Sequence record: OR455461.1 | Length of the DNA stretch: 64,000 bases | Reading direction: 5' to 3' (one strand) | Shown: positions 46,063 to 52,756 of the stretch, one piece after another | Layout: the number at the start of each line of letters is the position of its first letter | Numbering within the stretch: the stretch's first letter is position 1 | The notes under the pieces: generated by a model | What the model saw: only the letters and a program-made list of their open reading frames with translations | Told to the model about the DNA's origin: nothing | The model's database searches: none | Position numbers and translations under genes: made by a program

Positions 46063-47617
46063 TTAATAAATATAATCTTCGATGTCTATTTCATTTTGTT
46101 TAATTGTCATATCATGGAAAGACTTCATAGAGCTTGTTACAATTGCTTGAGCTACCTGATTGACTAATAAACCAATATTTTCTATACCTAATTTGTAAGG
46201 GAGTTCTCCTGCACATTTACTACAGATATCTTCACTTGCACAATACATAGGACTTCTGAAGTTCAATACTTTCCCAATATGCTCATCTACATTTGAAGTA
46301 GTTAACAGTGTTAATTGACCTTTTCTTCCTGAATTATCTTCAAAATATCTATAAAGTAAAAGATTCGCATTATCTTTAGTTAAAGTTAATTTTAATGTAT
46401 GTTTTGTTCTACAATCAGAACCTTGTTTATCTAATACAGTTGTTTGGAAAGCAGACATAAGTTTTTTAGCTTGATCATTTTATTATCTATATTTTATTAT
46501 AGATTAGACTATATCTTATGAATTTAATCATTTCTATATTTAGTCGTTGAACAACTTAATAAAGTTGATGCTAGTTAGTTTTTAACATTCTAGCAATTAA
46601 TAGAATTTATTGTGAGCATCTAATTTACCCACCTTCTTGAGTCATTTATGTTAATCTATATTAATTTAATATAGATCAGACTATATCAAAAACTCTTTAT
46701 GAGTTTAATTATATTTAGTCGTTGAACAATCATTCTGATTGATGCTGATTAAGTTTATCTCTTCTCAGCAATTAATAATTTTTCTATTATTACATTACTA
46801 TAATAAAGGGCATTCATATACCTAAAGCACGTCCAGCTGAACCAGCAGTCATAATGTCTCCAAACATATATAGTTCTTCTGGATCAATTCCATCAGCTAA
46901 AGAACTCTTAGCAATACGTATTTTACTAGGATCAGCGAAGTTTTTATTTGCTCCACGTATTAATGCAGTTAACTTGAAGTTATTTCCAAAACTACCTCTT
47001 GATCCACTATCATAAATATCAAGGTCTGCTAAACCTTCTAATTCTTCTTTACTTAACTTAATTAATTCTTTTTCAATAGCACTAATAGCATTCAATTCTT
47101 CACCAGGAGTATTTAATGCTTTACCATATTTCTCTAGTAATTCTTCTTTCTTTTGTTTAACTTTATCAGGAGCAACCATCATTGTAGTTGTCAAACTAGA
47201 ATTAATAAATCCTGCTATAGAGAAACCAAGCCATTGAAGTTTATCAATATACATATTCATATCTTTAGTTGTAATAACATCATTAAGTAATAAACTAGAT
47301 AACTCAGATTGTAGATTTCCTACACCTGATCCTCCCATATCTTTATTCATATATCCTATAATAGGTCCTATTTTATTGTCTAATATAAATTTATTAAATA
47401 TATATCTTCCAACTGTTGTTCTTTCATCTTTACTATTATAAACTAAATCTTTTTTAAGTTTAAATCTATCGCTAGGATTAAACATTGGTTGTGTATTTTG
47501 TCTAAATGCAAATAATTCTTTAAGTTTATCAAGAGTAATATCTTCTTTTTTTATACTTAATAAAGTTGATACTTCTTTCTCAGATAAATCTTTTTTATCA
47601 TAAGTCATATTAACCAA
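46063..47617 (-). CDS. Virion RNA polymerase beta'-like C-terminal subunit (phiKZ gp80-like), spliced, 408 aa
   Basis: Exons 47617-46820, 46642-46627 and 46475-46063 total 1227 nt in frame. The join gives GRALG-TQEGGY-QAKKL (bridge-helix equivalent); also TTVGRYIFN and DSGSRG. Confidence 0.85.
46476..46626 (-). mobile_element. Group I intron (151 nt, ORF-less) in beta'
   Basis: Exon end GUGGGU pairs with IGS GCUCAC; P4 UGCUAG/CUAGCA, P7 GACUA/UAGUC, terminal G; splicing rebuilds a TAT codon. Confidence 0.9.
46643..46819 (-). mobile_element. Group I intron (177 nt, ORF-less) in beta'
   Basis: P1 GGUAU/AUGCC with U.G, P4 UGCUGA/UCAGCA, R GUUCAACGACUA, S GAUAUAGUCU, terminal G. Confidence 0.9.
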
Positions 47618-47650
47618 TTTAATTTCACTTCTTTCATATATTATTTGTAA

Positions 47651-50900: not shown

Positions 50901-52756
50901 TCATTAATTAAATCTACTAGAGGTTATACTGATGGCGGTAAAAAAGATGCTAATGATACATCTCTATACACTCCATTAGAATTACTTAACCCTTATTCTA
51001 GTAGACATGCCGATAATCAAACATGGATAGTCGGCTTAAAAACTATTTAATTGCTGAAATTACTTTAAAGTTAATCAGCATCAATCAAATTGTTCAACGA
51101 CTAAATAATAGATACTAATTATATAATTAGTAATGATATAGTCTCAACTATGTATAAAGTATATAGAAATAAGATAATGTCTCCACGTATTGGAATGACT
51201 GGTATATGAATGCCCTTTATTATAGTAATATAATAATAGAAAAATCTTTAATTGCTGAGAAAATAATAATTAAGTTAATCAGCATCAATCAAATTGTTCA
51301 ACGACTAAATAAGATTATACCTAAACGGTATTTGATATAGTCTCAGCTTTAATTTATTTTAAAGAAGTTCATTAAGAACTAATACACAATAAACAAAGTG
51401 TATTAAGATAATCTGACTCAAGCCAAGCACGTAATTCCAACAAAAACTAATAGTAAACCATTAGTTGGATCTGGTGTTGATAAATCTTTAGCTTATCAAT
51501 TATCAGATACATTTGCTTTTAAAGCTAAACAAGATGGTAAAGTATTAAAAATTAACGAGAAAACTGGTTTAATGACAGTAGAATATATCAATGGTGAAAA
51601 AGATATTGTTGATATATCTGAAAAATTAGCCAAAAACTCTAACTCAGGTTTTTATCAATCTAATAAACTTGATCCACAATTTAATGTAGATGACACTTTT
51701 AATAAAGGTCAAATACTTGCTAAAAATAATAATTTCTTTGCTGGATCCGGTAAAGATAATGATATTCAATTTACTTCAGGTAAATTATCTAAAGTATCTG
51801 TAGCTAGCTCATATGGTATTATAAATGCCTTTCATTATAGTAATGTAATGTCAAAAAATTATTAATTGCTGAGAAATATTAAATTAATCAGCATCTCTAC
51901 ATTTATAGAGTTCAACGACTAAATATGATTATTCATTAATACTAATGAATTTGATATAGTCTAATCTATTATAAAAATATAATAGCTAATATAAATGACT
52001 TATGAAGATAGTTCTATTATTTCTAGTAGTATGTCTGAAGCAATGTCTACTAAAGTTACTATGAAGAAAACAGTAAATATTCCATCAAACACAAATATTC
52101 AATATATAGTTAAAGAAGGTCAGAAAGTACGTACAGGTGATCCTTTAATGATATTTGAAACTTCATTTGATGAAGAAGGTATTGGTTCTTTATTAGATAA
52201 AATCGGTAGTGAATTTGAACAAGATATTCAAGATATAGCTAATCGAGCTGTTAGAAGTAAATATACAGGTAATATTAAAAAGATTAATATTTATTATAAT
52301 GATGATATTGAAAATATGACTGATAGTTTAGCTAAATTAGTTAATAATTACATTAAAAAATCAAATGATAAATATAAAGAATATAAATCTGGAGTTAAAA
52401 ATAATAAAGAAACTTTACCTGGTATTGATGTAGATATTGCAGCTGTAGAGAAAATTAATACAGAGAAAATTAAAGGAGAAAAAGTTGACGGAGTTCTTAT
52501 TGAAATCTTCACTGAATATGAAGATGATATGAGTGTTGGAGATAAAATTAGTTTCTACGGAGCTTGTAAAACTGTAGTTGCTGATGTAACTCCTCCAAAT
52601 GAATCACCTTATTCTGAATATAGATCTGATGAAGAAGTTGAAGCTGTATTCTCTCCATTAAGTATTGTCTCTCGTATGACAGTTGATATTTATATGATGT
52701 TATTCACAAATAAAGCTTTAATAGAATTAAAACGTAAAGTAAAAGATATGGTATAA
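47934..52756 (+). CDS. Virion RNA polymerase beta-like subunit (phiKZ gp178-like), spliced, 1421 aa
   Basis: Exons 47934-51014, 51180-51203, 51416-51817 and 51998-52756 total 4266 nt in frame. Joins give SRHAD-SPRIGMTG-TQAKHVIP and SSYG-TYEDS; also LNGGKKVLTKQL, GDKISF and SRMT. Confidence 0.88.
51015..51179 (+). mobile_element. Group I intron (165 nt, ORF-less) in beta
   Basis: Exon end GCCGAU pairs with IGS GUCGGC; core P4, R and S elements present; terminal G. Confidence 0.9.
51204..51415 (+). mobile_element. Group I intron (212 nt, ORF-less) in beta
   Basis: P1 GGUAU/AUGCC; 5' part nearly identical to intron 46643-46819; core elements and terminal G present. Confidence 0.9.
51818..51997 (+). 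mobile_element. Group I intron (180 nt, ORF-less) in beta
   Basis: P1 GGUAUU/AAUGCC; AAUUGCUGAG, GUUCAACGACUAAAU, GAUAUAGUCU; terminal G. Confidence 0.9.

Follow-up and report, generated by a model that had tools for sequence, protein, structure and literature searches.

Compact group I introns are known from several systems. The Azoarcus pre-tRNA-Ile intron, of subgroup IC3, is approximately 205 nucleotides (nt) long and GC-rich, lies in the tRNA anticodon loop, and has been shown to self-splice; introns of subgroup IA2, of the type found in Staphylococcus phage Twort, carry the P7.1 and P7.2 helices. Here we examined a window of 64 kb from Staphylococcus phage AH12 (OR455461.1, 186001-250000; positions below are those of this window unless stated otherwise), in which an earlier note had predicted that five very small introns (I1 to I5) split both virion RNA polymerase (vRNAP) genes, encoding the C-terminal part of the beta subunit (beta-C) and the mid-domain of the beta' subunit (beta'-mid). 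The five segments are very probably group I introns of one compact family that lack an open reading frame (ORF), would excise themselves, and would spread by homing or recombination with occasional jumps. Like the Azoarcus intron, they are compact, lack large peripheral domains, and use a P2 tetraloop contact, whereas the AH12 introns are 144-212 nt long, have a GC content of about 20%, reside in protein genes, and are predicted rather than shown to splice. As in Twort, where group I introns with or without an ORF occur in orf142 and nrdE, there are several introns, sometimes several per gene; unlike those of the Twort IA2 type, they have no P7.1 or P7.2, and blastn with I4 and I5 matched six jumbo Staphylococcus phages only, with no detectable nucleotide similarity to Twort.

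Introns in this phage clade have been described before, as the earlier note had indicated. In Machias, MarsHill, and Madawaska, genes for an RNA polymerase subunit, DNA polymerase, gyrase B, terminase, and other proteins are disrupted by introns (Korn et al., bioRxiv 10.1101/2020.12.14.422802). These are the same clade and genes as in AH12, with the introns recognized via intact homologues, and the existence of the introns examined here is therefore not new. Exons were predicted by protein alignment in that work, and intron class, structure, and size were not given (bioRxiv 10.1101/2020.12.14.422802); it thus provides exon counts only, whereas the group I class, structure, and sizes are presented here for AH12. 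Bacillus phage AR9, grouped with the Staphylococcus jumbo phages as closest known, similarly has intron-split genes for vRNAP and the nonvirion RNA polymerase. In the Jug phages, 2513 group I introns were identified across 136 jumbo-phage genomes, with a mean of 18.5 per genome and a size of approximately 206 nt, mostly free-standing endonucleases, and metatranscriptome reads spanning the junctions (PMC12880540). Like AH12, each Jug genome has many ORF-less group I introns that fragment essential genes, whereas the hosts, Bacteroides/Phocaeicola, are different (PMC12880540). Compared with the Jug introns, those of AH12 are smaller (144-212 nt in 14 boundary-checked copies), include copies without P2 or P8, and occur as tandem pairs around exons of 16-24 nt. 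Degenerate group I-like introns of 56-81 nt in fungal SSU rDNA, claimed to be minimal, have P1, P7, and P10 only (PMC3160393), whereas the P3-P9 core is fully retained in the AH12 introns, P8-less copies excepted.

AH12 belongs to a group of AR9-like jumbo phages with a GC content of approximately 25%. Over the 6.8 kb that hold both vRNAP genes (OR455461.1, 232000-238800), AH12 is 97% identical to Machias, 95% identical to PB50 (98% in the comparison of single sites), and approximately 82% identical to LY01, Madawaska, MarsHill, S6, PALS_2, and DC4. The annotations of Machias, MarsHill, and Madawaska call the two genes "viral RNA polymerase beta subunit, C-terminal" and "viral RNA polymerase beta-prime subunit, mid-domain," and their coding sequences (CDSs) are joined from several pieces; in the AH12 GenBank record, the pieces are separate CDSs, mostly hypothetical proteins, and no intron is annotated. 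The exons and introns of AH12 are as follows (R and S are conserved core elements given below; IGS, internal guide sequence).

47934-51014, plus strand: vRNAP beta-C exon 1, ending ...SRHAD, homologous to S6_1000 and Machias beta-C
51015-51179, plus strand: I1, 165 nt, no P2; R 51092-51106, S 51135-51144; IGS GUCGGC at 51030-51035 pairs with exon GCCGAU
51180-51203, plus strand: 24-nt micro-exon encoding SPRIGMTG, continuous with the adjacent exons in S6 and, in PB50, with exon 3
51204-51415, plus strand: I2, 212 nt, P2 with GUAA loop, additional 3' hairpins beyond P9; R 51296-51310, S 51334-51343
51416-51817, plus strand: beta-C exon 3, TQAKHVIP...SSYG, 134 codons
51818-51997, plus strand: I3, 180 nt, P2 with GUAA loop; R 51910-51924, S 51953-51962
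51998-52756, plus strand: beta-C exon 4, TYEDS... to stop; Pfam RNA_pol_Rpb2_6, E 5.7e-09
46820-47617, minus strand: vRNAP beta'-mid exon 1, ending ...GRALG, homologous to S6_1010 and to beta'-mid of Machias and MarsHill
46643-46819, minus strand: I4, 177 nt, P2 with GUAA loop; R 46713-46727, S 46678-46687
46627-46642, minus strand: 16-nt micro-exon ACUCAAGAAGGUGGGU, encoding TQEGG and the first base of a Tyr codon
46476-46626, minus strand: I5, 151 nt, no P2; R 46538-46552, S 46506-46515; IGS GCUCAC pairs with exon GUGGGU
46063-46475, minus strand: beta'-mid exon 3, opening with the final two bases of that Tyr codon, followed by QAKKLMSAF... up to the stop

The segments thus lie exactly, to the base, where they had been predicted (46476-51997, 151-212 nt, ORF-less). 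Their GC content is 19-23%, and no ORF of at least 30 amino acids (aa) lies wholly within any of them in the ORF list of the window. The sequence motifs by which they had been recognized held up in occurrence counts across the window: the 15-mer GTTCAACGACTAAAT has exactly five copies, one per segment; GATATAGTCT has exactly six, one per segment and one at 23444; and AATTGCT(G/A) and (AATC/ACT)AGCATC were present in all five. Each segment is preceded by U and ends in G. Motif matches at 23444 and 23634 were rejected as chance, being in the wrong order and lacking P/Q elements. In the deposited annotation, WNX97846.1 (51572-51865, plus strand) starts within exon 3 and overruns 48 nt into I3, and WNX97844.1 (46814-47617, minus strand) overruns 6 nt into I4; both are artefacts of the ignored introns.

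Boundaries were taken from hand pairing and from empty sites in S6; the automatic P1/boundary picker was unreliable for I1-I3 and for AH12 genome positions 64405-64560. Joining the exons gave open frames of 4266 nt (beta-C) and 1227 nt (beta'-mid), with SRHAD-SPRIGMTG-TQAKH, SSYG-TYEDS, and GRALG-TQEGG-YQAK across the junctions. The frame restoration that had been claimed is matched by the uninterrupted genes of S6 (4254 nt for beta-C and 1227 nt for beta'-mid), which read SRHADSPRIGMTGTQAKH, SSYGTYEDS, and GRALGTQEGGYQAKQL. MAFFT alignment of the AH12 genomic sequence with the S6 CDSs placed five gaps at the predicted boundaries, with I1 offset by 2 nt and I3 split into 24 and 156 nt via repeated flanking bases. 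The relatives had the sites empty in different combinations: I1 is precisely absent from S6 and Machias; I2 is precisely absent from S6, PB50, and Madawaska; I3 is absent from S6, Madawaska, and MarsHill; I4 is absent from S6 and, precisely, from PB50; and I5 is absent from S6. In PB50, the empty I2 site with identical flanks reads ggaatgactggt/actcaagccaag and the empty I4 site ...gctttaggt/actcaagaaggtgggt/AAATTAG... (slashes mark junctions). In Madawaska and MarsHill the beta'-mid CDS is an uninterrupted 1227 nt, and Machias carries I2, I3, I4, and I5.

These empty sites also indicate that the 24-nt and 16-nt micro-exons, both foreseen in the earlier note, are genuine coding pieces. In S6 the 16-nt exon runs straight into both adjacent exons, and in PB50 it follows exon 1 without a gap. 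All differences between AH12 and S6 in the micro-exons (seven in the 24-nt exon and one in the 16-nt exon) are synonymous, indicating that both are kept as coding sequence and translated in frame. Machias beta' is annotated with two exons, yet two introns and the 16-nt exon are present; the micro-exon was apparently missed.

The introns interrupt conserved polymerase motifs. Searches with phmmer of the exon pieces against PDB gave nothing useful, and Pfam gave nothing on the intact S6 proteins; PDB searches with the intact S6 proteins yielded beta and beta' alignments. The S6 beta'-mid protein matched bacterial beta', and its I4/I5 region GRALGTQEGGYQAKQL aligned on ADTALRTADSGYLTRRL, a beta' segment which we take to be the bridge helix. 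In beta-C, the I1/I2 region RHADSPRIGMTGTQAKHLIAT aligned to the bacterial beta HxDxxR...QxQAVP motif, and, judged from the coordinates spanned by the E. coli matches, the SYG/TYEDS junction fell near residues 810-815 of E. coli beta. All three motif assignments made from the AH12 sequence hold.

Phage multisubunit RNA polymerases are naturally split over several genes (Korn et al., bioRxiv 10.1101/2020.12.14.422802), and the AH12 record lists the pieces as separate CDSs, so the fragments might be made as separate polypeptides, as are the subunits in phiKZ/AR9-type phages, with the inserts staying in place. This is extremely improbable. Micro-exons of eight and five codons without a start codon nonetheless changed only synonymously, the breaks fall within the motif aligned to the presumed beta' bridge helix and within the beta HxDxxR...QxQAVP motif, the inserts show a ribozyme fold with covariation (see below), and the homologous genes of sister phages are uninterrupted.

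All five segments showed the features of group I introns, which bears out the class that had been assigned to them. Every segment contains P (AAUUGCUG), Q (AAUCAGCAUC), R (GUUCAACGACUAAAU), and S (GAUAUAGUCU), and a P3-P4-P6-P7-P8 core with the P3/P7 pseudoknot. Hand pairing identified P1 with a U.G pair at the 5' splice site in five of five (I1, GCCGAU with GUCGGC; I5, GUGGGU with GCUCAC; I2 and I4, GGU+AU with AUGCC; I3, GGU+AUU with AAUGCC), as well as P10, in which 5 of 6, 4 of 5, 5 of 6, 4 of 5, and 3 of 3 bases directly 5' of the P1 guide were paired in the five introns in turn. All five also end in the terminal guanosine (omega-G), at boundaries fixed by the S6 empty sites. Single-sequence folding recovered P1, P2 (I2-I4 only), P4/P5, P6, P7 around P8, and P9, and so agreed with the prediction that the 151- and 165-nt introns lack P2. 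The minimum free energy (MFE) fold of I5 comprises P1, P4/5, P6, P7/8, and P9, with an MFE z-score of -4.1, and that of I1 is -3.3. The P7.1 and P7.2 helices of subgroups IA1/IA2 are absent, with 16-28 nt and one P8 hairpin or none between P3' and S, and the introns are assigned to no subgroup. None of the five encodes a homing endonuclease.

A covariance model was built from the five introns and the whole AH12 genome was searched with it in pieces (L008-L012 being outside the window), counting matches with E<1e-5 as strong. The five scored 119, 145, 149, 175, and 121 bits (I1 to I5). The genome holds 28 family copies, 5 in the window and 23 outside, so the five are not special to vRNAP. Host genes include gyrB, nrdE, and other polymerase-like genes (annotated rpoB_1 and rpoBC in AH12). 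For 14 single AH12 introns, S6 showed an exactly empty site; these introns have lengths of 144, 151, 156, 162, 165, 173, 173, 177, 177, 179, 180, 183, 206, and 212 nt; one double insertion relative to S6 measured 362 nt, and four AH12 intron clusters were left unresolved by the S6 alignment. The family model had no match in the S6 polymerase locus, and blastn with I4 and I5 had none in S6, PALS_2, DC4, or SA1. The 23 outside copies often occur in tandem clusters of two to four, e.g., at AH12 genome positions 134631-135441, 153739-154360, and 118652-119019, where approximately 21 nt of exon separate two introns; at such clusters the deposited annotation has fragment CDSs only. One family member seems to be split by an ORF (AH12 135272-136802, equal to L010 37272-38802, minus strand): its P/Q half (L010 38654-38802) and R/S half (L010 37272-37441) flank a 447-aa zinc-ribbon ORF (L010 37343-38686).

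Covariation was then scored after adding the polymerase loci of five relatives (43 matches, 42 distinct sequences). P3 was 98% paired, with five of its six pairs changed on both sides, and P6 was 100% paired, with three of four changed on both sides; in P4 one pair changed in a compensatory way, from G-C to the A-U seen in I5, and the two outer P8 pairs covaried. The covariation score of 0.455 exceeded that of shuffles (0.103; 0 of 500 reached the observed value). The alignment was fitted to the model and favours its structure, but slid partners gave at most 0.097, which argues for a real signal. Per-sequence folding formed the P4/5, P6, P8, and P9 hairpins from differing sequences in nearly all 28 copies, and the catalytic core and conserved joining segments were unchanged across all 28. 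In most copies P2 was capped by a GNRA loop (GUAA, GUGA, GAAA, or GAGA, and GCGA by eye) on stems that vary; approximately 10 copies, I1 and I5 among them, lack P2.

Mobility of the family cannot come from intron ORFs. Two free-standing ORFs near the beta' gene resemble homing endonuclease genes.

44780-46027, minus strand: homing-endonuclease-like ORF, 415 aa; Pfam DUF7487 and REase_MTES_1575; 35 nt downstream of the beta' gene
41368-43626, minus strand: second homing-endonuclease-like ORF, 752 aa; Pfam DUF723, DUF4379, and REase_MTES_1575

In both, CxxC zinc-finger modules (DUF7487/DUF723/DUF4379) recur along the protein, and the C terminus holds an REase_MTES_1575 nuclease domain. From these domains they are likely to be homing endonucleases of the CapR-like/EDxHD family, and the 415-aa ORF is a candidate trans mobilizer of the introns. 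The CapR-like and EDxHD/Vsr endonuclease family is found in vRNAP genes of AR9-like phages (PMC12350094), and ORF-less introns can be moved by free-standing endonucleases through collaborative homing (PMC3984707). Furthermore, related introns at the I1 site of MarsHill and at another beta site of Machias carry ORFs with CapR/DUF4379 domains. The patchy presence of the introns among near-identical phages is best explained by DNA-level homing or recombination at co-infection, possibly helped by free-standing CapR-like/EDxHD endonucleases in collaborative homing, together with occasional jumps to sites resembling the old one. I2 and I4 point to such jumps: each interrupts the 10-nt sequence GGT/ACTCAAG, in a different gene, and they share the same guide and are approximately 83% identical (via the Machias I4 copy), among each other's closest relatives. 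Either a site-specific endonuclease or reverse splicing could have carried an intron to the look-alike site.

Reverse splicing at the RNA level, followed by reverse transcription and recombination, might even be the main route of spread in place of endonuclease-driven homing. ORF-less introns do occupy more than 25 different sites, with related introns at guide-matching sites (GGU/ACUCA for I2 and I4; ...GGGU for the subgroup with the GCUCA guide), and Machias-type phages have a gene for a retron-like reverse transcriptase, as Korn et al. (bioRxiv 10.1101/2020.12.14.422802) report. We nevertheless consider this unlikely. Endonuclease genes of one family lie within or adjoin related introns, and precise presence or absence among phages 95-98% identical is what co-infection recombination or homing would produce. 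To our knowledge, mobility of group I introns by reverse splicing has never been shown in phages.

For self-excising group I introns, the following course of events is predicted. Each intron would fold as P1-(P2)-P3-P4/P5-P6-P7-P8-P9 and leave the pre-mRNA by two-step, guanosine-initiated transesterification, its internal guide pairing with the last three to six exon bases (P1, with the U.G pair) and then with the first three to six bases of the next exon (P10). In the 16-nt exon, the first five bases, ACUCA, would serve P10 of I4 and the last six, GUGGGU, P1 of I5; in the 24-nt exon, UCUCCA would serve P10 of I1 and GGU P1 of I2. Guide contacts this short allow two introns to share one 16-nt or 24-nt exon. 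Five correct splicing events would rebuild beta-C and beta'-mid of the virion RNA polymerase, and might, as the earlier note proposed, gate vRNAP synthesis. We infer splicing because a viable phage needs intact subunits and because of the structure, and catalytic autonomy and the mode of spread are inferred likewise.

Several observations weigh against the reading of the five segments as self-excising, mobile group I introns. Splicing is argued from necessity and structure, with the essentiality of vRNAP assumed by analogy with phiKZ/AR9-type phages. Any link between a particular endonuclease and one of the five sites is conjectural. P7 (GACUA/UAGUC) is invariant in the family, and is thus consistent with a group I core without adding covariation support. 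P1 of I2-I4 uses three exon bases only, the helices are AU-rich, and I1 and I5 lack P2 and its tetraloop contact, which makes unaided folding at 37°C uncertain. Finally, Rfam at the gathering threshold and at E<=10 found no intron at the 6.5-kb or window scale. In scans of approximately 400 nt with RF00028, covering I1, I2, I4, and I5, the scores were 36.1, 31.5, 23.4, and 26.9 bits, respectively, all below the gathering score of 50 bits, as was that of the gyrB copy described below. The alignments were full-length (model positions 1-253; E 1e-7 to 5e-4 in small searches), and their helix assignments agreed with the folding and hand assignments. The shortfall in score stems from the deletion of P2 and of peripheral positions and from a short P5/P6/P8 rather than from mismatches in the core.

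Some of these points would also fit group I introns too reduced to fold alone, spliced with a phage or host protein (an RNA chaperone or maturase-like protein) or at low temperature. Such dependence appears doubtful but is worth weighing: the GC content of 19-23% with short helices, the loss of P2 in I1 and I5 and of the entire P8 in some family members, the lack of a GNRA loop in L9 by per-sequence folding, and the report by Korn et al. (bioRxiv 10.1101/2020.12.14.422802) that no plaques of Machias-type phages could be observed at 37°C all speak for it. Against it, the 28 copies retain the complete catalytic core and conserved joining segments without change, and most of them have a GNRA-capped P2, which points to RNA-RNA tertiary contacts; moreover, no maturase-like ORF is associated with the introns.

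The earlier note had also suggested that the 151-nt and 165-nt introns may be near-minimal natural ribozymes. In this family, 151 nt is not the minimum. The smallest copy, of 144 nt, lies in gyrB at the KGLG/EVN junction (AH12 166082-166225, equal to L011 19082-19225, minus strand) and is precisely absent from S6. It has no P2, its P8 is replaced by CAAAG, and it aligned full-length to RF00028 (27.1 bits) with all 59 P8 positions deleted and one base inserted. The same vestigial P8 was found in two more copies (L011 7205-7360 and L009 21590-21756, in pieces of the AH12 genome). It is conceivable, though we hold it only tentatively, that the 151-nt I5 without P2 and the 144-nt gyrB copy without P2 and P8 are the smallest natural group I ribozymes with a complete or nearly complete core that self-splice unaided; our literature search found no published statement of the smallest known group I intron. 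If true, they would provide a useful minimal natural group I scaffold, and P8 would be dispensable in vivo.

Standard annotation and Rfam thresholds miss these introns, and essential genes of AH12, PB50, and LY01 have consequently been deposited as "hypothetical protein" fragments with the micro-exons lost, which a family-specific model fixes. For DC4, too, its authors report that an Rfam search of the genome returned no introns, a null result to be expected because DC4-type phages lack them and because Rfam misses them. In RNA polymerases, gyrase, and ribonucleotide reductase, the approximately 28 ORF-less copies sit in codons that belong to conserved catalytic motifs, and their sites are empty in phages 95-98% identical, which makes them a tractable system for the spread of endonuclease-less group I introns. 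The exact R...S pattern occurred in more than 119 stretches of IMG/VR, including phage contigs of 220-400 kb and giant-virus bins. Together with the Jug study, these matches mean that jumbo phages were already known to carry small ORF-less group I introns in swarms. What is new here is modest: the group I structure of the family, its sub-threshold Rfam status, and the exact micro-exons, and likewise the 28 AH12 copies, with those of 144-151 nt lacking P2 and three lacking P8.

Compact full-length matches to the family model were also seen on IMG/VR contigs of uncultivated phages (58-306 kb in length, two at 270-306 kb), where pairs stood back to back with 3-7 nt between them; Staphylococcus phages are thus not alone in having tandem mini-introns around micro-exons. 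The tandem pairs are as follows.

L044, 3401-3745: tandem pair in IMG/VR
L067, 12355-12699: tandem pair in IMG/VR
L047, 6154-6523: tandem pair in IMG/VR

Other features of the window were noted beside the polymerase genes. Two tRNA-like genes, at 44178-44266 and 44625-44696 (both minus strand), scored 60 and 45.8 bits with Rfam, and ARAGORN reported them as "tRNA-???, anticodon (tt)" with no anticodon assigned; the former has an insertion of approximately 14 nt in the anticodon arm, and the Machias homologues of both are annotated as pseudo tRNA-Asn. Downstream of the beta gene, the ORF at 52847-54109 (plus strand) has the same peptide, LEESLDKEF[N/S]L, at both ends, and shares a zinc-ribbon-like motif, CEDCGS...LSLNESN.L.CE.CG, with the ORF at 55542-57458.

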